Virus record (IMG/VR): IMGVR_UViG_3300025161_000004
Location: 182,769 to 246,768 of that record
Reading direction: 5' to 3' (one strand)
DNA length: 64,000 nucleotides
Part shown: piece after piece, positions 5,315 to 48,578 of the stretch
How positions within the stretch are numbered: the first letter of the stretch is position 1
How the letters are laid out: each line of letters begins with the position of its first letter
Translations under genes and position numbers: made by a program
The notes under the pieces: generated by a model
Told to the model about the DNA's origin: nothing
What the model saw: only the letters and a program-made list of their open reading frames with translations
Database searches by the model: none

Positions 5315-5350
5315 AAATCAAAAACCCAAGCAAATTGCTTGGGTTTTCTT
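5315..5350 (-). terminator. Attenuator terminator of tRNA operon 1
   Basis: AAAACCCAAGC-AATTT-GCTTGGGTTTTTGATTTT on the minus strand. Confidence 0.85.
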
Positions 5351-5373
5351 ATAATATCCTAATTTGGATTACT

Positions 5374-5457
5374 TTAGGATATGTGTATAGTTTGCCCAAG
5401 CAACAGCTTTTGTAGCTGATGTTTGGGTTGTGGTACTATAAACACATCCATTTTCAT
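5374..5457 (-). CDS. Leader peptide 1 (Pro/Gln/His sensing), 27 aa
   Basis: MKMDVFIVPQPKHQLQKLLLGQTIHIS; contains TTGCTTGGG, complementary to the terminator 5' arm. Confidence 0.85.
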   Translation of the reverse strand: MKMDVFIVPQPKHQLQKLLLGQTIHIS

Positions 5458-5474
5458 TTCTTTAAAATTTTACA

Positions 5475-5504
5475 CAAAGTTATAACTAAATACGTTAATG
5501 TCAA
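5475..5504 (-). promoter_or_regulatory. Promoter of tRNA operon 1
   Basis: TTGACA...GTATTTA...TAACTTTG (Bacteroidota -7 TAnnTTTG). Confidence 0.7.
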
Positions 5505-10555: not shown

Positions 10556-10878
10556 ATAAAAAAATAAACCCTTACAGTAAGCCAATTTATGGTTAATAAC
10601 AGTCATGTTGATATTTTAAGACCCATTATTGATAAAATAAAAAGTTCTGTTAGACCAGAAGAAATTGAAGAAAAAAAACTTTTATTATCCAACCCGATTG
10701 AACTTTTTCAAAAATGGTTAATTTATAATCTAAGGCACTATCCATAGCACCATACATAGCACAAGCAGAATCAAAATGATGTGGAAGTGTACGTTCACTA
10801 TTTGATTGTATGTAAATCATAACTACATTTGCAATGTATTACACGTAAAAGTAGTCAAAAAAAATATTTAAAAAAACT

Positions 10879-10920
10879 TGATAATTAATTAAACCTTTTA
10901 TACTTTTGTAACGTATTTAA
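10879..10920 (+). promoter_or_regulatory. Promoter of tRNA operon 2
   Basis: TACTTTTG at 10901-10908, followed by ACGTATTTA. Confidence 0.7.
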
Positions 10921-10936
10921 GGAAAAACAGAAATTA

Positions 10937-11029
10937 ATGGAAAACTTAATATTAGATATGGCAGTCGTAGCAGAAGCGTTGGTTTTAGACGCTGAGTGGA
11001 ATTGTATTGGGTTTTCTATTAAGAGATAA
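10937..11029 (+). CDS. Leader peptide 2 (Glu/Leu/Asp/Met/Ala/Val/Trp sensing), 30 aa
   Basis: MENLILDMAVVAEALVLDAEWNCIGFSIKR; GGGTTTTCTATT antiterminator segment. Confidence 0.88.
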   Translation: MENLILDMAVVAEALVLDAEWNCIGFSIKR

Positions 11030-11053
11030 TTGAATTTAAAATTATACAAATAG

Positions 11054-11090
11054 AAAACCCGATCACAAAAAAGATCGGGTTTTTTGTTTT
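11054..11090 (+). terminator. Attenuator terminator of tRNA operon 2
   Basis: AAAACCCGATC-ACAAAAAA-GATCGGGTTTTTTGTTTT. Confidence 0.9.
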
Positions 11091-32527: not shown

Positions 32528-32565
32528 TTTTTTAAAAAAAAAATAAGTTTTTTTTGATTTAAAAG

Positions 32566-32583
32566 TATTTAGTACTATATTTG
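32566..32583 (+). promoter_or_regulatory. Promoter of tRNA operon 3
   Basis: GTATTTA, then TATATTTG at 32576-32583. Confidence 0.7.
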
Positions 32584-32599
32584 CAAAATATTTAAGGGA

Positions 32600-32668
32600 A
32601 TGATAACTATTAAGAAATATTATTATAAAAAGTCTTCAAAAGTGAAGATCAGTAATACTATATCTTAA
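32600..32668 (+). CDS. Leader peptide 3 (Lys/Tyr sensing), 22 aa
   Basis: MITIKKYYYKKSSKVKISNTIS; GTGAAGATCAG antiterminator segment. Confidence 0.9.
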   Translation: MITIKKYYYKKSSKVKISNTIS

Positions 32669-32685
32669 CAGTAATATAAAAAAAT

Positions 32686-32728
32686 AAAAACCCTGATCTT
32701 CACAAAAAGATCAGGGTTTTTATTTTTT
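32686..32728 (+). terminator. Attenuator terminator of tRNA operon 3
   Basis: AAAAACCCTGATCTT-CACAAA-AAGATCAGGGTTTTTATTTTTT, abutting tRNA-Tyr. Confidence 0.92.
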
Positions 32729-32812
32729 GGGAGTGCGCTAACGTTGGAGTGTTAGGCTTGTCTGTAAAACAAGTGCCTGTTGGCTTAGTAGGTTCGAATC
32801 CTACCACTCCCA
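32729..32812 (+). tRNA. tRNA-Tyr(GTA)
   Basis: CTTGT-CTGTAAA-ACAAG; long variable arm. Confidence 0.9.
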
Positions 32813-32906: not shown

Positions 32907-32993
32907 CCCCTCTTAGCTCTAATTGGCGAGTCGAAAGACGAGAGCTTCTGACTTTTAATCAGAAGGTTGCTGGTTCGAATCCAGCAGAGGGGA
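32907..32993 (+). tRNA. tRNA-Lys(TTT) with expanded D loop
   Basis: TCTGA-CTTTTAA-TCAGA; 22-nt D loop containing a GTC-GAAA-GAC hairpin. Confidence 0.85.
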
Positions 32994-33404
32994 CAAAAAA
33001 AATATTTTTTATTATAATTATCTTTGATAACCATTGTAAGACATATAGTATTTTATACCAGTTCTTATTTACGTAAAAGTTATATAGTATTGAATATTAT
33101 TCAAATTAATGTGTTTTAGTGTTTAGCTTTTTTATTTATATTTGTACTTATAGAAATAAGTTATTATGAATAAAGTGATTGAAAAAGCAAAAACGATAAT
33201 TATATCATTAATTTCATATGAGGTTGCAAGTAAAAAATTTGGTTTTAGATTATATTCTAAAAAGTTTATCGATAATCAAGTTAATCGATACACCCATATC
33301 TAAAGGGATGATTATATTATTTTTTTCGTGTCTTGAATTATCTAATATATTCAATTGACAAATTGAAACTACTGATATATATTTGTTTTTTTAGTTTAAA
33401 ATCT

Positions 33405-38540: not shown

Positions 38541-38634
38541 CCGAATATAAATACATTTTTTATGTATATAAAATTTTATAATCGTATTGATTATTATCAA
38601 TTATTATTTAAATTTGTTTTTTAAAAAAAAATTT

Positions 38635-39330
38635 ATGGATATTAATAAAGAATTTAGAAATTATGCAGTTAAACACATAGGTATTTCATCGTTATCATTA
38701 CATAGATATGATAATGCATTAATTAATCATGGTGTTACCAATATGACTCGTTCAATTATAGAAGAAAGGCAAGTTAACTTCAGAGAAATCGACGTTTTCT
38801 CAAGATTAATGCAAGATAGAATCATATTTTTAGGTATGCCCATTGATGATATTGTATGTAATATTGTGACTGCACAATTATTATTTCTTGATAATCTCGA
38901 TCCAAGTAAAGAAATCACAATGTACATAAACTCCCCTGGTGGTTCAGTTTATGATGGTTATGGGATTAGAGATGTTATGCAATATGTTACACCAGAAGTA
39001 TCAACCGTTGCAATATCATTAGCAGCATCAATGGCGGCTATTCTTTTAACTTCTGGTGCTGCAGGCAAAAGATACTCACTTCCTTACTCTCGTATTATGT
39101 TACATCAACCATTAGGTGCTATGCAAGGTCAAGCATCTGATATGGAAATTAGCTATAAGCAAATTTCAATAATAAAGAAAGAACTTTATGAAATTATTCA
39201 AATGCACTTACCAGACAATAAAAAGAAATCACTTGAGCAGATTGAAAAAGATTGTGATAGAGATTATTGGATGAATGGTAAAGAAGCTGTTGAATACGGC
39301 ATTATTGATGAAGTAATAGAAAGAAGATAA
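38635..39330 (+). CDS. clpP: ClpP protease subunit
   Basis: FSRLMQDRIIFLG, YINSPGG, AASMAA, MLHQP, DRDYWM; Bacteroidota-style N-terminus. Confidence 0.95.
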   Translation: MDINKEFRNYAVKHIGISSLSLHRYDNALINHGVTNMTRSIIEERQVNFREIDVFSRLMQDRIIFLGMPIDDIVCNIVTAQLLFLDNLDPSKEITMYINSPGGSVYDGYGIRDVMQYVTPEVSTVAISLAASMAAILLTSGAAGKRYSLPYSRIMLHQPLGAMQGQASDMEISYKQISIIKKELYEIIQMHLPDNKKKSLEQIEKDCDRDYWMNGKEAVEYGIIDEVIERR

Positions 39331-39387
39331 ATAAAAATGAACTTTTTCTAAAAAAGAATGTATTTAATAATATATTACGATAAAACT

Positions 39388-39465
39388 ATGAAAAATATAA
39401 TCACAATTACCCAAATTACAAGGATAAGAGGTACAAAAACCTCAAGTAATGGGTTTATTGTGTGA
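39388..39465 (+). CDS. Leader peptide 4 (Ile/Thr/Arg sensing), 25 aa
   Basis: MKNIITITQITRIRGTKTSSNGFIV; GGGTTTATTGTGT antiterminator segment. Confidence 0.88.
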   Translation: MKNIITITQITRIRGTKTSSNGFIV

Positions 39466-39493
39466 AATTTTTTAGTTAATATCTTTAACACAT

Positions 39494-39524
39494 AAACCCG
39501 ATAAAAAATCGGGTTTTTTTGTTT
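39494..39524 (+). terminator. Attenuator terminator of tRNA operon 4
   Basis: AAACCCGAT-AAAAA-ATCGGGTTTTTTTGTTT. Confidence 0.88.
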
Positions 39525-39631
39525 ATATATCTTGATGATATGGAGTAAATTATGTTTATTTGCCATAATAAAATCTAAATTCCATTTTTAGTCAAGGTAT
39601 AGAGATTGTTATTTGATATATTGGGTTTTAT

Positions 39632-39716
39632 GCTTGGGTCGCATAGAGGTCGATTGCGCCTGACTTGTAATCAGGAGAGTTTATACTCCACGTGGGTTCG
39701 AATCCCACCTCAAGCT
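39632..39716 (+). tRNA. tRNA-Thr(TGT) with long variable arm
   Basis: CCTGA-CTTGTAA-TCAGG; 16-nt variable region. Confidence 0.85.
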
Positions 39717-39721
39717 CATTT

Positions 39722-39793
39722 GCCTCTGTAGTTCAATGGATAGAACATTTGACTTCTAATCAAAAGATACAGGTTCGACTCCTGTCAGGGGTA
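39722..39793 (+). tRNA. tRNA-Arg(TCT)
   Basis: TTTGA-CTTCTAA-TCAAA. Confidence 0.92.
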
Positions 39794-39887
39794 CTAAAAC
39801 TTAGTTCAGTATTTTTTTTTAAATAAGCAATAATTTTAATTTAAAAATATTTTATTTTAGATAAATGGTTTTCAGGTTAAAGTTTAT

Positions 39888-39960
39888 ATCTCCATAGTTT
39901 AATTGGACAAAATAGATGACTACGAATCATCAGTTATAGGTTCGAATCCTATTGGAGATA
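39888..39960 (+). tRNA. tRNA-Arg(ACG)
   Basis: GATGA-CTACGAA-TCATC. Confidence 0.9.
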
Positions 39961-39964
39961 CAAA

Positions 39965-40088
39965 GAAGTGTGTTTAGCTTAAAATGTCCATTAGTAATGA
40001 TAGAGAGAGTTACTAATGCTTAAATGATAGAGTCCCTCGCTCTCTGTAAGAGGTGGATGTAGAAATTGACTAACTACAACACACTTCA
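39965..40088 (+). ncRNA. Structured tRNA-like element of unclear identity
   Basis: 10-bp closing stem GAAGTGTGTT/AACACACTTC; internal 9-bp hairpin CATTAGTAA/TTACTAATG. Confidence 0.4.
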
Positions 40089-40112
40089 TATGATATTACT
40101 ATATATCTTAAT

Positions 40113-40171
40113 TAGTTAAGGTATGAAGTCGATACTTACGAGATTACGGGTTCAAATTCAGTCTTGACTAC
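40113..40171 (+). pseudogene. tRNA remnant lacking the anticodon arm
   Basis: TAGTTAAG/CTTGACTA acceptor, GTAT/ATAC D stem, GGTTCAAAT loop. Confidence 0.4.
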
Positions 40172-40202
40172 TAAGTGGGTTATGTGGAATTTCTTTCAAC
40201 AT

Positions 40203-40277
40203 TGTCGGATAGCTCAGTTTGGTTAGAGCACAAAGCTGATACCTTTGGGGTCGCTGGTTCGAATCCAGTTCCGACAA
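40203..40277 (+). tRNA. tRNA-Ile(GAT)
   Basis: CAAAG-CTGATAC-CTTTG. Confidence 0.9.
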
Positions 40278-40291
40278 CATTATTTTTTTTT

Positions 40292-40753
40292 ATGGAAAAG
40301 CAAATACGATTAACAATTGAATTAGTGCCAAGTACATGTTGGTATACTAATGTACGTAGTCATGTATCAGAATTTACTTGGGATATAATAAGAAAAAAAT
40401 GCTATAGACTTGCTAATCATAAATGTGAAATATGTGGTTCTACGGGTAAAGAGCAAGGATATAATCACAATGTTGAATGTCATGAAATATGGTATTATGA
40501 TGATGTAAATCACAAACAAATCCTTACGGGATTAATTGCGTTATGTCCTTATTGTCACAAAACTAAACACGTTGGTTTAGCTCAAATTAATGGTGAAAAA
40601 GAAATTGTTATTAATCAATTAATGAAGGTTAATGGTATGTCTAGAGAAGAAGCAATAAAATACATAACGGAATCATTTTCGATTTGGAAAAAAAGAAGTG
40701 AATTTAAATGGGAAACCGATATTACCTATATAAAAAAATATATCAATGATTAA
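40292..40753 (+). CDS. HNH endonuclease-family protein
   Basis: CEICG...ECHEIW...LCPYCHKTKH; start moved past the tRNA to ATG 40292. Confidence 0.85.
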   Translation: MEKQIRLTIELVPSTCWYTNVRSHVSEFTWDIIRKKCYRLANHKCEICGSTGKEQGYNHNVECHEIWYYDDVNHKQILTGLIALCPYCHKTKHVGLAQINGEKEIVINQLMKVNGMSREEAIKYITESFSIWKKRSEFKWETDITYIKKYIND

Positions 40754-41033
40754 TAGAAAAAATAAAATAGTATTTTATGATTATCAATTAACTAAAGATA
40801 TTGATAAGTTTGGTTTGGATGCTCATCCTAAATTAGGATTTGAAAATCAAAGAAACGTAATTAAATATATCGAAGATAATTTTGATAAATCTGATTTATC
40901 AAATAGCACACTAGAGATTATGATTTACAAAGTAGAAGTAATTAAAACAATTAGAGTAGGAATTGATAAAAATAATAGTATTATCATAAAAAAATCACAT
41001 AACCAAAATTTGAATAAATTATTGACGGCATAG
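40746..41033 (+). CDS. Hypothetical protein
   Basis: 95 aa, coupled to the upstream gene. Confidence 0.65.
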   Translation: MINRKNKIVFYDYQLTKDIDKFGLDAHPKLGFENQRNVIKYIEDNFDKSDLSNSTLEIMIYKVEVIKTIRVGIDKNNSIIIKKSHNQNLNKLLTA

Positions 41034-41163
41034 TATCGGTTTTAAAACAATTTTTTAGATAAAAATTATTTACTAAATCCCATATTTTTTTCATTACTAA
41101 AATAACCGAATTATAAAATTTATCGTATAATATATTTATACTTAATATTTAATTTATTCTATT

Positions 41164-41433
41164 ATGAATTTTGGTTTAAAAGAAAAAATCATTGAATTGC
41201 GCAAACAAAAATTAACTTACAATCAGATAGCCGAAAGGCTGAATTGTGCCAAATCTACTATTTCATATCATTGTCAAAAAGAGGGTTTAGATGACATCGG
41301 ATTAAAACTTAATCCTGTCGAAAAAAATGTCGTGAAACAAATTAAGAGCTTTACTCGTAATAATTCTTTAAATGCTGCTGTCAAACATTTTGGATTGTCA
41401 AAAACGACAATTATAAAATATAAGAAATTATAA
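41164..41433 (+). CDS. Double-HTH small protein (possibly a truncated homing endonuclease)
   Basis: TYNQIAERLNCAKSTISYH; AVKHFGLSKTTI. Confidence 0.6.
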   Translation: MNFGLKEKIIELRKQKLTYNQIAERLNCAKSTISYHCQKEGLDDIGLKLNPVEKNVVKQIKSFTRNNSLNAAVKHFGLSKTTIIKYKKL

Positions 41434-41434
41434 A

Positions 41435-41881
41435 ATGCTTGTGGAAAGTATAGGTGGTGAGTGTCCATGCTGTAACTATGATAAAATGTTACAACGACAT
41501 GGCTCATCGGAGTACTATCTTTTGGATGGCTGTCCAAATTGTGGTTTTGGATATGGTACTAATCATCATGATTTACATAATTTCGGTATTGATGCTTGGA
41601 TTGATTACGGTAGACATGTGTTAGCATCCATATTCTCTCATTCTATTGATGGTGAGTTTTATTTAGTAGATGATAGTAAATTTGAGCATGATGATATACG
41701 ATATTATTTGTTGAATAATGATTTAAAAAAGTTGGATAAAGATGTTCTCAGAAAAAGAATATTTGATTGGATGGAAACACAAGATATAAAGTCTGACAGT
41801 ATCACCGTATTTCGATATAATCGTGTTGATGTTGAAAGATGGTTATCTACTAATCCAATGATATTTAAAAAAATTGATTGA
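41435..41881 (+). CDS. Zn-finger hypothetical protein
   Basis: CPCC...CPNCG. Confidence 0.65.
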   Translation: MLVESIGGECPCCNYDKMLQRHGSSEYYLLDGCPNCGFGYGTNHHDLHNFGIDAWIDYGRHVLASIFSHSIDGEFYLVDDSKFEHDDIRYYLLNNDLKKLDKDVLRKRIFDWMETQDIKSDSITVFRYNRVDVERWLSTNPMIFKKID

Positions 41882-42050
41882 TGATTAAGGAAAAAAAATA
41901 TCAAACACAATTTTGTAAAATAAGGTAGTGAAAGAAGAAATCTATAAGAAACATTACAATGGAATGATTGAATGTTTTAAATTATCTGAATTACCTACAA
42001 ATCTAGAACCTGACGATTTAATTGTATTCCATTAAATTATATGATTAATT

Positions 42051-42278
42051 ATGATTTGGATTGACGCTAATGTAGAACTCCCAGATGAATTTATACATGT
42101 ATATGTTAAAATTCGCAGAAGAAAAAGAATTATAAAGGAGGTTGCTTTTTATTCCGCAGAAAGAAAAGAATTTTTTACTAAGTCAGGTGATACGTTTAAA
42201 ACAAAATATGTTCAATGGCTAAAAGATAACGACTACTTAAAAGAATCAAGTAAAATGAAAAAAATAATCAAAAAATAA
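42051..42278 (+). CDS. Small hypothetical protein
   Basis: MIWIDANVELP N-terminus. Confidence 0.6.
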   Translation: MIWIDANVELPDEFIHVYVKIRRRKRIIKEVAFYSAERKEFFTKSGDTFKTKYVQWLKDNDYLKESSKMKKIIKK

Positions 42279-42299
42279 TAAACCTTTTCTTGGCAAGAA

Positions 42300-42319
42300 C
42301 GTATTTATGTGTATATTTG
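42300..42319 (+). promoter_or_regulatory. Promoter of tRNA operon 5
   Basis: CGTATTTAT, then TATATTTG at 42312-42319. Confidence 0.7.
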
Positions 42320-42338
42320 CAGAAAAATAAGAAGAAAA

Positions 42339-42458
42339 ATGAAATTTTTAAATCTAAATAATAATCCTTCGAACCTGAATAGTAATTTTATATCAGGGAA
42401 TATTTTTCTTGGTACTTGTCAAGAGAAGTCGGGTTATTCTTTAGATTTTGGTGGATGA
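42339..42458 (+). CDS. Leader peptide 5 (Phe/Leu/Asn/Ser/Ile/Gly/Cys sensing), 39 aa
   Basis: MKFLNLNNNPSNLNSNFISGNIFLGTCQEKSGYSLDFGG; GTCGGGTTATTCTT antiterminator segment. Confidence 0.88.
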   Translation: MKFLNLNNNPSNLNSNFISGNIFLGTCQEKSGYSLDFGG

Positions 42459-42485
42459 TAAACTAAAACAACTAAAGAAATCAAG

Positions 42486-42516
42486 AAAACCCGACACAAA
42501 AGTCGGGTTTTTTATT
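42486..42516 (+). terminator. Attenuator terminator of tRNA operon 5
   Basis: AAAACCCGAC-ACAAAA-GTCGGGTTTTTTATT. Confidence 0.9.
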
Positions 42517-42595
42517 ATAAGTATATGACATGGAGATGAGGTTATTGATTATTATCAAAAAAGTATGGTTTTGATTCATATCAAATTTACAATAT

Positions 42596-42668
42596 GTGGT
42601 AGTTACCGAGTAGGTCAAGGTGACGGTCTGAAAAACCGTTAATGTGGGTTCGATTCCCACCTACCACA
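42596..42668 (+). tRNA. tRNA-Phe(GAA)
   Basis: ACGGT-CTGAAAA-ACCGT. Confidence 0.9.
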
Positions 42669-42738
42669 CAGTTTAATATGAAAACTAAAGATCTTTGACA
42701 GATTGATATTTTTTTTCTACCTTTATGTGTAGGTTTAT

Positions 42739-42811
42739 GCTCATGTGGCGCAATGGTTAGCGCAGGATGCTTATATCATCAAGGTTGCAGGTTCGAGTCC
42801 TGCCATGAGTA
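42739..42811 (+). tRNA. tRNA-Ile(TAT)
   Basis: GATG-CTTATAT-CATC; canonical D and T arms. Confidence 0.8.
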
Positions 42812-42814
42812 CAT

Positions 42815-42904
42815 AGAGAGTTGGCAGAGTTGGTTTATTGCACTTGTTTGCTAAACAAGCAGTCGAGATAACTTGACTCAAGGGTTCGAATCCCTTACTC
42901 TCTA
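42815..42904 (+). tRNA. tRNA-Ser(GCT)
   Basis: CTTGT-TTGCTAA-ACAAG; long variable arm. Confidence 0.9.
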
Positions 42905-42912
42905 CTTATTAT

Positions 42913-42985
42913 GCAGTAATAGCTCATTTGGTAGAGCATTGCATTGCCAATGCAAGGGCGGCGGGTTCGAATCCCGTTTACTGCA
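42913..42985 (+). tRNA. tRNA-Gly(GCC)
   Basis: TTGCA-TTGCCAA-TGCAA. Confidence 0.9.
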
Positions 42986-43039
42986 CAATAGACTTGGAAA
43001 AACCTCTTATCTTGTTAAAGATAAAGTAACCAAGTTGTT

Positions 43040-43110
43040 GCCCGAATGGTGTAAATAGTAGCATACTTGCTACGCAGCAAGAGGTGTTGGTTCAAGTCCA
43101 ACTTCGGGCC
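43040..43110 (+). pseudogene. Atypical tRNA with a 6-nt anticodon loop (Arg ACG-like)
   Basis: CTTGC-TACGCA-GCAAG; D loop lacks GG; acceptor and T stems intact. Confidence 0.5.
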
Positions 43111-43239
43111 TAATAACATATTACTACTGAAGTAGATTAATATGTGTGAATAGAATATAGAAATGTGATTATAGAGATAAAAATAGAAACAAAAAAAACT
43201 ATTTTTATTATGGATTTAAAACCTACTGACACAGTAATT

Positions 43240-43311
43240 GCGATATAGGTGTTGATGGTTACATAGCAGACTTCCAATCTGCAGTAGCGGGTTCGAGCCC
43301 CGCATATCGCT
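43240..43311 (+). tRNA. tRNA-Gly(TCC)
   Basis: GCAGA-CTTCCAA-TCTGC; U73. Confidence 0.88.
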
Positions 43312-43369
43312 CATAACTATATTTGGTTAGTATAATTAATATAATAAATATTTTATTATAAAATAATAC

Positions 43370-43454
43370 AGAGAGTTGGCAGAGCGGTCGAATGCACCTG
43401 TCTTGAAAACAGGAATCCTTTCGGGGATCGGGGGTTCGAATCCCTCACTCTCTG
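43370..43454 (+). tRNA. tRNA-Ser(TGA)
   Basis: CCTGT-CTTGAAA-ACAGG; long variable arm; G73. Confidence 0.93.
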
Positions 43455-43573
43455 CAAACAAATTAAATTGATATTTTAATTCAGTTAGTGCATATTTTAG
43501 CTTTACCAATAATATGTTGATATTTTAATAGACAAAATAATGATATATTTATATAATTAATATAGAATTTTAT

Positions 43574-43664
43574 TCTGGTGTAGCTGATGTGGTTTTAGCT
43601 GCGGACTGTTAATCCGTGAATGAAATATATTGAAATAAAGTAGGTTCGAGTCCTACCACCAGAG
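43574..43664 (+). tRNA. tRNA-Asn(GTT) with a 22-nt variable region
   Basis: GCGGA-CTGTTAA-TCCGT; G73. Confidence 0.82.
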
Positions 43665-43665
43665 C

Positions 43666-44079
43666 ATGGAAATTAAGAAGCAATTTAGAGTTATCGTTGC
43701 AGGTAGCAGAAACTTTAATGATTATGATTTCTTAAAAGAAAAACTTGATCGTTTATTAATTAATAAAATTAAAGATTCTGAAATCATAATAGTATCTGGT
43801 ACTGCATATGGTGCTGATAAATTGGGAGAAAAATATGCAAAAGAAAGGGGATTCAAAATCCATAGATATCCAGCTGATTGGGGAAAATTTGGTAAAGCAG
43901 CTGGATATATAAGAAATATTGAAATGTTAGAAAATGCTGACGCATGTATTGTTTTTAGGGTAAATAATTCGAAAGGTTCAACACACATGATAGATATTGC
44001 AAAAGAGAAAAATATCCCACTGAGATACTATGATATATACGACACACGCTCCAATGATGGAATTGGTAGACATGCCTGA
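43666..44079 (+). CDS. SLOG/DUF2493-family protein
   Basis: IVAGSRNF...VSGTAYGAD...YPADW...GKAAG.IRN.EM...SKGS; 3' end overlaps tRNA-Leu. Confidence 0.85.
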   Translation: MEIKKQFRVIVAGSRNFNDYDFLKEKLDRLLINKIKDSEIIIVSGTAYGADKLGEKYAKERGFKIHRYPADWGKFGKAAGYIRNIEMLENADACIVFRVNNSKGSTHMIDIAKEKNIPLRYYDIYDTRSNDGIGRHA

Positions 44080-44135
44080 TTTAGAATCAGGTGCGAACTA
44101 ATAGTAGCGTGTAGGTTCGAATCCTACTTGGAGTA
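44048..44135 (+). tRNA. tRNA-Leu(TAG)
   Basis: CCTGA-TTTAGAA-TCAGG; long variable arm. Confidence 0.9.
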
Positions 44136-44207
44136 CAAAAGGTATGGTTAATGATTGGTGTTCTATCAATTATAAATCTCAATTTATTAATTAAACAATA
44201 CTAAAAT

Positions 44208-44289
44208 GCCCTTATGGTGGAAATGGTAGTCACGCTGGTCTAAGAAGCCTGTGTCGAAAGACGTGTAGGTTCGAATCCTACTAAGGGCA
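44208..44289 (+). tRNA. tRNA-Leu(AAG)
   Basis: CTGGT-CTAAGAA-GCCTG (one mismatch); variable arm GTCGAAAGAC. Confidence 0.8.
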
Positions 44290-44297
44290 CTTAGTAT

Positions 44298-44374
44298 GTG
44301 GGAGTCGCCAAGTGGTTCAAGGCGCAAGTCTGCAAAACTTGTATATGTCGTGGGTTCGAATCCCACCTCCCACT
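44298..44374 (+). tRNA. tRNA-Cys(GCA)
   Basis: CAAGT-CTGCAAA-ACTTG; U73. Confidence 0.9.
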
Positions 44375-44583
44375 CGAATAAAATTTAGTAATACGGATTG
44401 ACTTTTTTATTATACTTTCTATTTTTACAATCCATACCAAAACAAATTAAATAAAACATATTATCAATTTAATTAAGTGATAATATTTTTATGCTTATTA
44501 TTACCAATTTAAATTGTATTGTTTTCTTAGATAAAAAAATTTATTCTCAAAATTTTTCATGTAATTTAAATTAAACAGAAATA

Positions 44584-47690: not shown

Positions 47691-47764
47691 GTAACCAAGA
47701 TGATTAAATTTTCGTATAATACAACAAATACGATCCATTAGCATAGTGGTTAATGTAGGACTCT
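47691..47764 (+). repeat. Second copy of the direct repeat (intact tRNA 5' half)
   Basis: See 45964-46036. Confidence 0.85.
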
Positions 47765-47803
47765 CTAAAAGTCTTGAGGTGGGTTCGATTCCCACATGGA
47801 TCA
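47732..47803 (+). tRNA. Amber suppressor tRNA(CTA)
   Basis: GATCCAT/ATGGATC acceptor; GGACT-CTCTAAA-AGTCT; GTGGG-TTCGATT-CCCAC. Confidence 0.88.
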
Positions 47804-47932
47804 CAAAAATTTATTAAATATGATCTTAAAGATATATCACAACACCAATCGGAAGGTTGAATATGAACTGTGGGCTGTGGTGTTTTTATTTAAAAATCAT
47901 AAAAAATAACTTAACAATTTGAAACTTTTTAA

Positions 47933-47950: not shown

Positions 47951-47970
47951 TAAAAAAAAACAGCACAACA

Positions 47971-48324
47971 ATGAAAAGGTAGATATCTAAACTAATTACT
48001 ATAACCAGACAGGATTTACCTATTGGTTATCAAATTGCACAATGCTGCCATTCTGTTGCAGATTTTGCGTACTATCAACCAGAATTATTTAAATATTGGA
48101 GAGAAAATTCTAACTATAAAATATGTCTCTCTGTTAAAGACGAACAATCTCTAATCAAACTTCATAAAAAACTTATTGATAAAGGCGCACAAGTTGTCGC
48201 ATTTATTGAACCTGATTTACAAAATCAAATGACGGCAATTACCTTCTATGGTACTCCTGAGTATCAGAAAGTAACATCATATCTACCACTTGCAGGCAAA
48301 CAATTAAACCATAATATACTATGA
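47971..48324 (+). CDS. Pth2-like peptidyl-tRNA hydrolase with in-frame TAG at codon 4 (missed by the ORF track)
   Basis: ATG AAA AGG TAG ATA...; readthrough gives 117 aa with TRQDL..GYQIAQ..HS...W...K..LSVKDE..L...F.EPDL.NQ.TAI...YLPL. Confidence 0.8.
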
Positions 48325-48578
48325 AATAGATAGTCGATTCAAATCAGAAAGAAGTGATTGTATTCCACTTTAACAAGAAACATTTGGAGGATCCAAATAT
48401 TCCTATGTGGACAATCAAACATAAAGGTAAAACCTATTATGTACATCACTTAACAAGCTATATTGGATTTTCGACAAAAGAAACTCCAGATAATGAGCAT
48501 ACTAAAGGTAGTTTAAAATTTAAAGGTAAATTAAAGATATATGAAAAAGATAATCAGATACTTGCAGAGATAAGCTAA
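48321..48578 (+). CDS. Hypothetical protein with in-frame TAG at codon 3
   Basis: ATG overlaps the upstream TGA (ATGA); ATG AAA TAG ATA GTC... is in frame with ORF 48354-48578. Confidence 0.7.

Follow-up and report, generated by a model that had tools for sequence, protein, structure and literature searches.

The window, i.e., the whole stretch of 64,000 nucleotides that was analyzed and that comes from a huge phage, contains a clpP-like protease gene (38635-39330) that matches annotated phage clpP and has its ATG 18 nt downstream of a promoter of the Bacteroidota type, TTG-N19-TAAATTTG (38587-38616), detected by a regular expression scan. Directly downstream of clpP, and on the plus strand like all other features of this locus, lies a small ORF (39388-39465), the putative sensor and leader of what we call unit A4. 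It is followed by an intrinsic terminator, AAACCCGAT-AAAAA-ATCGGGTTT plus a run of seven T (39494-39520, stem at 39494-39516), which was also called independently as such. Next come four genes that score as good tRNAs: tRNA-Thr(TGT) (39632-39717, 86 nt with a long variable arm), tRNA-Arg(TCT) (39722-39794), tRNA-Arg(ACG) (39888-39961) and tRNA-Ile(GAT) (40203-40278). The spacer of 116 nt between the terminator and the first tRNA is a decayed tRNA-Thr(GGT) (39524-39600), recognized by alignment and intact in the relative phage L002; neither ARAGORN nor Rfam called this remnant. It is possible, and cannot be excluded, that this spacer harbors an unrecognized promoter in front of tRNA-Thr(TGT). 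No significant structure was found in the other spacer, at 39960-40200 (z = -0.96).

The leader encodes a peptide of 25 codons, MKNIITITQITRIRGTKTSSNGFIV, and is conserved as an ORF in L002. Its codons 1-13 are ATG AAA AAT ATA ATC ACA ATT ACC CAA ATT ACA AGG ATA, and codons 14-26 are AGA GGT ACA AAA ACC TCA AGT AAT GGG TTT ATT GTG TGA, the stop being located at 39463-39465. An earlier note on this DNA had placed the start at the ATG at 39358. This part failed and has been corrected to the conserved ATG at 39388, because the former is not conserved (it is ACG in L002) and falls inside a promoter-like motif, AATGTATTTA. Numbered from ATG 39388, the note's count of 12 Ile, Thr or Arg codons within codons 4-18 held (12/15), with five Ile, five Thr and two Arg (ACA three times, ACC twice, AGG and AGA). 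Altogether, these amino acids account for 13 of the 24 residues, compared with a background of 0.177 (binomial P 6e-5), and among the 298 small ORFs of the window only the A4 leader reaches this fraction. For Thr, Ile and Arg, the phage uses ACA, ATT and AGA most often, and these three codons are decoded by tRNAs of the A4 operon. At the codon level the match is imperfect, since the Arg(ACG) tRNA is present and no CGN codon is found in the leader, as had also been claimed (the relative L002 does have CGA and CGT). In addition, the decoding of both ATA codons falls to Ile(UAU), a tRNA of another operon, and the cognate GGT tRNA of both ACC codons has been lost. A global recoding of TAG was considered for this window and rejected.

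The RNA of this region can adopt alternative pairings. Segment 1 (39402-39419, codons 5-11, ITITQIT) pairs with 39446-39462 both in the minimum free energy (MFE) fold and in the consensus fold with L002. Segment 2 (39446-39463), which can pair with either segment 1 or segment 3, overlaps the last leader codons and the stop, with the TGA abutting it. Segment 3, ACACATAAACCC (39488-39499), is the 3' strand of the antiterminator and overlaps the 5' arm of the terminator. The pairing proposed in the earlier note, GGGTTTATTGTGT (39451-39463) with ACACATAAACCC and a single bulge, held, the bulge being one T. The sequence AAACCC is common to the antiterminator and the terminator 5' arm, and therefore the two structures are mutually exclusive. 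A small hairpin within the leader (GAGGU...ACCUC, 39428-39443), present in the MFE fold and supported by a compensatory change in L002, is possibly a pause or spacer hairpin. The fold of the region has a z of -4.3 and none of 200 shuffles was as stable. Free RNA is predicted to fold as 1:2 plus 3:4. When the leader is masked as by a stalled ribosome and the 3' arm of the terminator is still unmade, 2:3 forms in the folding at -13.4 kcal/mol. The duplex of segments 2 and 3 reaches -15.8 kcal/mol vs. -5.3 +/- 1.9 in shuffled leaders (z = -5.7, 0/500 reach it). Hence, at the sequence level, all four segments expected of a classical ribosome-mediated attenuator are present in A4, the switching between them being inferred.

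How A4 is transcribed is less straightforward. Four sibling units in the window (see below) carry the composite motif GTATTTA-N4-TAnnTTTG. At A4 only a decayed remnant, GTATTTAATAATATATTAC (39360-39378), is found, with two mismatches that are both in the -7 box. This agrees with the claim that a GTATTTA motif is present and the TAnnTTTG box missing, since the remnant fails in the last box only. Where L002 has CTTGAC...TATATTTG, the window has CTAAAA...TATATTAC with 9 nt deleted, i.e., the -33 TTG and the -7 TTTG are both intact in L002 and both mutated in the A4 of the window. Boxes of the Bacteroidota type are more frequent in the window than in shuffles (25 vs. 9.2 +/- 3.3, regular expression scan). 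AACGTATTTA alone was not over-represented (14 vs. 12.8 expected), unlike the composite motif, which is. Between a phage-type promoter and read-through from clpP, the two options that the earlier note had offered, the latter is favored because the A4 boxes are mutated, the clpP box is canonical and no terminator was found in the interval between clpP and the leader. Its own promoter having been lost, the A4 of the window is probably co-transcribed with clpP, although there are no RNA data; lacking promoter boxes of its own, its activity would therefore depend on clpP read-through.

The comparison with L002, whose ClpP is 85% identical, provides evidence of conservation. The leader is kept (peptide MKNLIKITRITRKRRTTSSNGFIV), as are the ORF, the stop position and the hairpins, and the homologue has a dedicated promoter of the Bacteroidota type. 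The end of its terminator is only 11-12 nt before the first tRNA. Two base pairs have changed in a compensatory manner between the window and L002, one from A-U to G-C at 39413/39450 (segments 1:2), and another from G-C to C-G at 39430/39441, in which GGT>CGT is matched by a synonymous ACC>ACG. In both cases L002 has an additional Arg codon through a non-synonymous change, which is accompanied by a synonymous change in the pairing partner. This covariation is based on two sequences only. Arg tRNAs and Arg leader codons amount to four and four in L002 (CGA and CGT included) and to two and two in the window. Further homologues of A4 were not found: an exact-pattern scan of IMG/VR matched only the contig of the window and L002, and a scan of the genome_contigs set gave 96 chance matches, none with a terminator plus tRNAs. 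Searching metagenomes with ClpP retrieved loci of ca. 55% identity, which we take to be bacterial (their taxonomy was not identified), with a neighboring tRNA-Leu without recognizable attenuator; a few of them carry an unrelated hairpin and ORF. Contigs from four DNA runs also place the phage of the window in metagenomes of hot springs, sediment and soil. Contigs from several metagenomes provided no informative variants in A4, and none in the leader at a threshold of >=10%.

A4 is one of five attenuator-like units in the window (A1-A5), each located before a tRNA operon. Unit A1 (5316-5504, minus strand) comprises a promoter (5504-5475), a leader (5457-5374, MKMDVFIVPQPKHQLQKLLLGQTIHIS) and a terminator (5347-5321) followed by Pro, Pro, Gln, His and Gln tRNAs, and it is likewise conserved in another relative, L251. 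The remaining three are on the plus strand. A2 (10878-11090) has a promoter, a leader (10937-11029, MENLILDMAVVAEALVLDAEWNCIGFSIKR) and a terminator (11054-11083) ahead of tRNAs for Trp, Glu (two), Val, Ala, Asp (three), Leu (two) and Met. In A3 (32554-32725) a promoter, a leader (32600-32668, MITIKKYYYKKSSKVKISNTIS) and a terminator (32688-32719) precede tRNA-Tyr(GTA) and tRNA-Lys(TTT); no tRNAs were found near relatives of the protein encoded upstream of this unit. Finally, A5 (42290-42517), which has a homologue in L002, consists of a promoter, a leader (42339-42458, MKFLNLNNNPSNLNSNFISGNIFLGTCQEKSGYSLDFGG) and a terminator (42486-42511), with Phe, Ile, Ser, Gly, one unassigned, Gly, Ser, Asn, Leu, Leu and Cys tRNAs behind. 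Jointly, the tRNAs of the five operons span all 20 amino acids. The AAACCC..GGGTTTTT terminators of the window lie just upstream of tRNA operons in five of five cases, and apart from the terminator the leaders have no sequence in common. In each leader, the amino acids of the operon behind it are over-represented (binomial P 5e-4 to 4e-6), the true assignment of leaders to operons is the best of the 120 permutations, and in all five units the antiterminator is significant (z from -4.6 to -7.5) and the stop codon is on or just after segment 2.

The same design was found in the published Mahaphage genomes LR756501, LR745206 and LR756502 (634-735 kb) and in several families of IMG/VR contigs. These genomes have been public since 2020, without annotation of the attenuator elements. 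We compared leaders and operons with every leader family represented by a single unit (n = 14), without phylogenetic correction and without a complete survey of tRNA arrays. Amino acids of the operon were present in the leader in 71/73 cases vs. 108/207 for the others (OR 32, P 2.6e-14), and the link persisted when the window units were removed (OR 20, P 1.5e-8). The match between leader and tRNAs was better in frame than in both other frames in 14/14 families, and in split codon boxes the leader codons prefer the box with a tRNA in the operon by 35 to 12. Many units have no space for a promoter of the tRNAs alone, with just 6-15 nt between the end of the terminator and the first tRNA. In some of the families outside the window the antiterminator was not significant by a simple duplex test. 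Searches of GenBank phages with the leaders of LR756501, L095 and L126 gave matches at the tRNA level only, and the flanks of the LR756501 region (308-358 kb and 374-424 kb) had no tRNAs. Arrays of 10 to about 30 tRNA genes are also carried by the cultured phages Melville (T4-like), Thalassa (T5-like), Catera (Bxz1-like), EFDG1 and RBC8 (phiCbK-like), whose hosts belong to other phyla. Their 13 tRNA clusters differ in that no terminator or leader was found within 140 nt upstream, and the tRNAs are apparently transcribed with neighboring genes.

These units share with thrL, ilvL, hisL and trpL of Escherichia coli an ORF with regulatory codons, the 1:2, 2:3 and 3:4 hairpins, an intrinsic terminator and a stop near segment 2. 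The leader peptide thrL is rich in Thr and Ile, and the Ile/Thr-rich peptide of A4 resembles it. The Rfam model Thr_leader (RF00506) aligns in its full length at 39386-39523 with 21.7 bits, below the cut-off of 55, and Trp_leader (RF00513) gives 25.1 bits against a curated cut-off of 41, so that neither was matched at gathering thresholds. The differences from the leaders of biosynthetic operons are that A4 is phage-encoded and would regulate tRNAs instead of enzymes, and that, where those contain runs of one or two amino acids, the phage leaders sample many (up to ca. 12). Closer in purpose are the attenuators of synthetase genes such as E. coli pheST, or those preceding the aminoacyl-tRNA synthetase genes leuS, trpS, alaS and thrS in Streptomyces (PMC8079986), which likewise control a translation component for the amino acid that is sensed. 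However, their target is the charging enzyme and each leader deals with one amino acid, whereas the phage units would act on the tRNA itself, the very product that is decoded where the ribosome stalls. T-box riboswitches also respond to tRNA status by a terminator/antiterminator switch upstream of translation-related genes, but they bind uncharged tRNA directly without need of translation, while the phage signal is specific to the reading frame. The T-box model had no match in the A4 region, either at the gathering threshold or at E <= 1.

A short enriched ORF, a terminator, an exclusive antiterminator, the 1:2 pairing with its stop placement and related target genes are the sequence-level criteria of the class, and A4 meets them all; the functional criterion, i.e., read-through that rises when cognate charged tRNA is limiting and that depends on translation of the leader, is inferred. 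The ORF, its codon bias, the alternative pairings, the terminator, the conservation, the compensatory changes and the statistical link between leaders and tRNAs are shown. The claim of an attenuator over Thr, Arg, Arg and Ile tRNAs is supported, with every sequence-level expectation met. Thus, A4 is probably a ribosome-mediated leader-peptide transcription attenuator gating a phage tRNA operon; that it is transcribed, that the leader is translated, that ribosomes stall and that read-through is conditional are inferred. In the mechanism that we propose, RNA polymerase would transcribe the 25-codon leader, most likely from the clpP promoter (from the dedicated one in L002). With charged Ile-, Thr- and Arg-tRNA plentiful, the ribosome would reach the TGA and occlude segment 2, keeping it unpaired because the stop overlaps it. 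Segment 3 would then be free, the terminator with its seven T would form and transcription would end before the tRNA genes. The outcome would be the same if the leader were not translated, with segment 1 pairing to segment 2. If any of these tRNAs became scarce, the ribosome would stall on codons 4-18 over segment 1, segment 2 would pair with segment 3, no terminator would form and tRNA-Thr(UGU), Arg(UCU), Arg(ACG) and Ile(GAU) would be made. The product tRNA would relieve the stall, so that the supply of tRNA would be under a negative feedback driven by demand. The window would hold five such loops, covering among them tRNAs for every amino acid. The model assumes tight coupling of transcription and translation in the presumed Bacteroidota host, which is uncultured.

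Among the other explanations, one is that the attenuator is real and its signal is amino acid starvation, i.e., uncharged tRNA, tied to host nutrition. The characterized leader attenuators (trp, his, thr) do read charged tRNA and depend on amino acid supply, and the two signals are inseparable from sequence alone. Furthermore, a stall reports charged tRNA, so starvation would likewise trigger read-through, a situation in which extra tRNA is unhelpful. We consider this unlikely as the main signal: extra tRNA gives no relief from starvation, the regulated genes are tRNAs, and the leaders sample nearly all operon tRNAs (71/73) with preference for matching codon boxes. Besides, the Arg codons of the L002 leader rise with the number of Arg tRNA genes. 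Codon sampling and this rise therefore fit the sensing of the operon's own products. It is similarly improbable that the A4 of the window is a decaying relic, no longer regulatory, of a class that functions elsewhere. In favor of decay are the mutated promoter boxes, the 9-nt deletion, the lost tRNA-Thr(GGT) and the missing CGN codon. Against it, the leader ORF is intact, as are the terminator and each of the four segments, contigs from several metagenomes carry the stretch with no leader variants listed at >=10%, and there are a clpP promoter upstream without an intervening terminator and four good tRNAs downstream.

About as improbable is that the hairpin is just a constitutive terminator of clpP, the small ORF a product of chance and the tRNAs expressed from their own downstream promoter. 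In favor of this, the terminator is 164 nt past the clpP stop, the leader of the window lacks its own promoter, the gap between terminator and first tRNA amounts to 116 nt and AT-rich DNA gives many small ORFs. However, chance cannot account for the in-frame Ile/Thr/Arg bias, L002 has kept the ORF with compensatory changes and its own promoter, and the four siblings and the family-wide link would be left unexplained. The long gap of the window is a decayed tRNA copy, and in L002 it shrinks to 11-12 nt. Finally, direct sensing of tRNA by the leader RNA (T-box-like) or binding of a phage protein, without need of translation, is very unlikely: the alternative hairpins would suit a riboswitch too and the conserved AACGTATTTA motif near promoters might be a protein site, but there is no match to a T-box or other riboswitch even at E <= 1, the signal is best in frame in every family, starts and stops are conserved with the stop on or just after segment 2 in each window unit, and no leader sequence is shared except the terminator.

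Why phages carry tRNAs, and how these are controlled, is an open question, and to our knowledge there has been little work on the regulation of phage tRNA genes. No prior description of leader-peptide control of tRNA genes was found in the full-text literature searched, and the tRNA-targeting form of ribosome-mediated attenuation is probably new. It would widen the targets of attenuation from enzymes and synthetases to tRNAs themselves, and the units suggest that ribosome stalling at particular codons feeds back directly on the transcription of tRNA genes. A bolder reading, towards which we lean only slightly, is that Mahaphages and other tRNA-rich phages run their whole tRNA complement via "sampler" leaders, each containing roughly one codon or more per tRNA for almost all tRNAs of its operon; the other phages concerned probably infect Bacteroidota. 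If true, the phage would gauge the decoding capacity of the host codon by codon, each operon being switched on only when one of its tRNAs is limiting. The circuit would also activate by itself upon depletion or cleavage of host tRNAs, for example by host shut-off or anticodon-nuclease defenses, and would explain the balance among 30 or more phage tRNA genes. As compact and modular multi-codon sensors of decoding, the leaders are possible parts for synthetic biology. For the biology of these phages, they may represent a sequence-readable report of the codons whose limitation in the host the phage "expects", and they provide a testable hypothesis of how megaphages would buffer translation against the loss of host tRNAs.

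The leader ORF of A4, the attenuator unit lying 3' of clpP, runs from the ATG at 39388 to the TGA at 39465 (product MKNIITITQITRIRGTKTSSNGFIV). An earlier note had begun it at the ATG at 39358, but this triplet falls inside a promoter-type motif and is ACG in L002, a relative whose ClpP is 85% identical; that start was therefore rejected in favor of 39388. All its other sequence-level statements about A4 held: 12 of codons 4-18 encode Ile, Thr or Arg, there is neither a CGN codon in the leader nor a TAnnTTTG box at the unit, and GGGTTTATTGTGT (39451-63) and ACACATAAACCC (39488-99) form a duplex interrupted by a single bulge. The Ile/Thr/Arg composition (P 6e-5; among 298 small ORFs in the window, no other reaches that fraction), the fold of the region (z = -4.3) and the duplex between pairing segments seg2 and seg3 (-15.8 kcal/mol vs -5.3 +/- 1.9 in shuffles) are all well above chance expectation.

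The terminator (39494-39520) has a 9-bp stem followed by seven T's. In the predicted fold of the free RNA, seg1 (39402-19, codons ITITQIT) is paired with seg2 (39446-62), with a small inner hairpin at 39428-43, and the terminator stem forms at 39494-39516. When the stalled-ribosome state was modelled by masking the 5' part and leaving the 3' arm of the terminator untranscribed, seg2 paired with seg3 (the antiterminator), using up the AAACCC of the terminator. Since the stop codon adjoins seg2, a ribosome completing the leader would block the antiterminator. This is the textbook layout of the trp, his and thr attenuators. The Rfam models Thr_leader (21.7 bits vs 55) and Trp_leader (25.1 bits vs 41) match exactly at A4, both below threshold, which represents likeness and not family membership.

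A terminator scan of the window, which is AT-rich (29% GC) and has 35 tRNA genes called by ARAGORN, gave five terminators of the form AAACCC...GGGTTTTT, all directly upstream of tRNA operons and each preceded by a small ORF. These leaders are MKMDVFIVPQPKHQLQKLLLGQTIHIS (A1, before Pro, Pro, Gln, His and Gln tRNAs), MENLILDMAVVAEALVLDAEWNCIGFSIKR (A2, before Trp, Glu, Glu, Val, Ala, Asp x3, Leu x2 and Met), MITIKKYYYKKSSKVKISNTIS (A3, before Tyr and Lys), that of A4 (Thr, Arg, Arg and Ile) and MKFLNLNNNPSNLNSNFISGNIFLGTCQEKSGYSLDFGG (A5, before Phe, Ile, Ser, Gly, Gly, Ser, Asn, Leu, Leu and Cys); between them, the five operons supply tRNAs for every one of the 20 amino acids. The actual leader-operon pairing ranks best among 120 permutations, the enrichment is significant leader by leader (P 5e-4 to 4e-6) and so is the antiterminator, highly, in every unit (z -4.6 to -7.5). 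Even the Leu codons are partitioned, TTR in 4/4 cases in A2 (Leu-UAA and Leu-CAA tRNAs) and mostly CTN in A5 (Leu-UAG and Leu-AAG). A motif, AA(C/A/T)GTATTTA, is also conserved at all five leaders (5487-5496(-), 10910-10919, 32562-32571, 39357-39366 and 42298-42307), within the promoter spacer 4 nt 5' of the -7 box in four units and 3' of this box in A2; it could bind a regulator or extend the promoter.

L002 preserves the clpP-leader-terminator-tRNA order, with leader MKNLIKITRITRKRRTTSSNGFIV, an intact promoter (TTGAC...TATATTTG) and Thr(GGT), Thr(TGT), four Arg and two Ile tRNAs; A5 and A1 are conserved there too. Two non-synonymous changes from the window leader, CAA>CGA and GGT>CGT, each add an Arg codon, and the partner changes (AAT>AAC and ACC>ACG) are synonymous, maintaining pairs in seg1:seg2 and the inner hairpin. 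Arg codons go from 2 to 4, as do Arg tRNA genes.

The same design is present in published Mahaphage genomes: LR756501 (leader MLFNSNISVKFTPAPAVAFRRGTGTGTGTCVPAGCGFEGMNG, then Arg x3, Thr x3, Val x2 and Ala, with Gly and Pro further downstream), LR745206 (MTTNSTHKNFSKSHKWFSNQSFGTESVLSLN, then His, Phe, Trp, Lys x4, Arg and Ser) and LR756502 (two units, before Phe/His/Lys and before Arg/Ser). Several more leader families came from IMG/VR, scanned for a conserved pattern in the anticodon arm of tRNA-Thr. When each of the 14 families was represented by a single unit, the leader matched its own tRNA set better in frame than in either other frame in 14/14 (Wilcoxon P 6e-5), and 71/73 operon amino acids appeared in the leader, vs 108/207 other amino acids (OR 32, P 2.6e-14; OR 20, P 1.5e-8 without the window units). 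In many units only 6-15 nt separate terminator and first tRNA, so that the tRNAs are reachable solely via read-through. Five cultured phages whose hosts are from other phyla have no comparable leader or terminator at any of their 13 tRNA clusters, and nor does the tRNA-Leu adjoining ~55%-identical ClpP loci, which we take to be bacterial (without taxonomic identification). As a separate observation, two IMG/VR loci, L132 and L095, have homologous leaders (MKNTLKHMVNCLPSIQWSFGYITQNQ... and MKNTLRHMVICNKPSNQWSFSYITRNQ...) before different tRNA sets; 5/7 classified substitutions track tRNA gain or loss (Arg, Asn and Lys codons lost, Leu and Gly gained).

The window copy of A4 has its peculiarities. 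Relative to L002, where both promoter boxes are intact, it carries mutations in each box and a 9-nt deletion. Since clpP has a canonical promoter box (38587-38616) and no terminator intervenes before the leader, A4 is probably fed by clpP transcription, supporting the clpP readthrough suggested in the earlier note, and the attenuator probably serves as clpP terminator as well. Between the terminator and tRNA-Thr(TGT) lie 116 nt that represent what is left of the tRNA-Thr(GGT) gene still intact in L002 (pseudogene at 39524-39600); the leader retains two ACC codons despite this decay. The Arg(ACG) tRNA has no CGN codon to sense it, and the tRNA for the two ATA codons, Ile(TAT), is encoded in operon A5. 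A Cys/His-rich ORF of 153 aa (40294-40753) starts 16 nt 3' of tRNA-Ile without an intervening terminator, and the attenuated transcript may therefore extend into protein-coding genes.

The best explanation for A4, and a likely one, is demand-driven attenuation, with transcription, leader translation, stalling and conditional read-through being inferred. When charged tRNA for Ile, Thr or Arg is scarce, the ribosome would stall over seg1, seg2:seg3 would form and the terminator would be bypassed; the operon tRNAs then made would relieve the stall. A constitutive clpP terminator accompanied by a chance ORF is improbable; the compensatory changes, and a codon content specific to both frame and operon, speak against it. 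We also consider it unlikely that starvation is sensed instead of tRNA. Nor does A4 appear to be a decaying relic; its imperfections lower confidence in the full function of this copy and have no bearing on the class. Direct sensing by RNA or protein, without translation, is opposed by the same codon content and compensatory changes and is very improbable.

Several tRNA genes are themselves unusual. That with the Thr anticodon (TGT) is 86-88 nt long with a long variable arm (window 39632-39717; L002 7000-7086; 8004-8091 in L087, another comparison locus). In bacteria, such a type-II shape is normally that of Leu, Ser and Tyr tRNAs. The gene has been conserved, with an invariant anticodon arm, in the window, L002 and LR756501, and the Thr label rests on the anticodon only. 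ARAGORN missed or miscalled two genes in A3 (32729-32812 and 32907-32994): tRNA-Tyr(GTA) was detected only by Rfam, and the Leu(gag) call was rejected, as the gene reads as tRNA-Lys(UUU) with an enlarged D-loop bearing a GUC-GAAA-GAC mini-hairpin. One tRNA-like gene has an abnormal anticodon loop (43040-43110; ARAGORN 'tRNA-??? (cg)', Rfam tRNA 49.7 bits) and is conserved at the equivalent place in L002 (10912-10983). There is also an amber-suppressor-type tRNA (47732-47804, anticodon CTA, labelled Pyl by ARAGORN), and shortly 3' of it ORFs at 47970-48330 contain TAG in frame as their third or fourth codon (ATGAAAAGGTAG..., ATGAAATAG...). Reading TAG as sense barely lengthens ORFs across the window; global recoding was therefore rejected, and any recoding would be local.

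At 100% protein identity, the window corresponds to the 246,768-bp IMG/VR contig IMGVR_UViG_3300025161_000004. Its nearest GenBank relatives are 'uncultured phage' genomes of 634-735 kb (LR7565xx and LR745206) from the Mahaphage clade, with Bacteroidetes as predicted hosts (Al-Shayeb et al., 2020; PMC7162821). Bacteroidota-type promoter-like boxes (TTG-N17-21-TAnnTTTG) are enriched, 25 in the window vs 9.2 +/- 3.3 in shuffles. Metagenomes of sediment, hot springs and soil from separate studies (runs X1-X6) contain contigs near-identical to parts of 38700-44400, one hot-spring run covering this stretch entirely, and for this reason the phage may be widespread. Leader-peptide attenuation is known to control biosynthetic operons and the genes of transporters and aminoacyl-tRNA synthetases (PMC8079986). 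In the literature searched, we found no phage or bacterial tRNA genes described as being under such control, and neither attenuators nor leaders are mentioned by Al-Shayeb et al. (2020); subscription journals were mostly uncovered and a prior report cannot be excluded. The mechanism itself would be classical, and what is probably new is its target (tRNA operons), the phage setting and the multi-amino-acid 'sampler' leaders.
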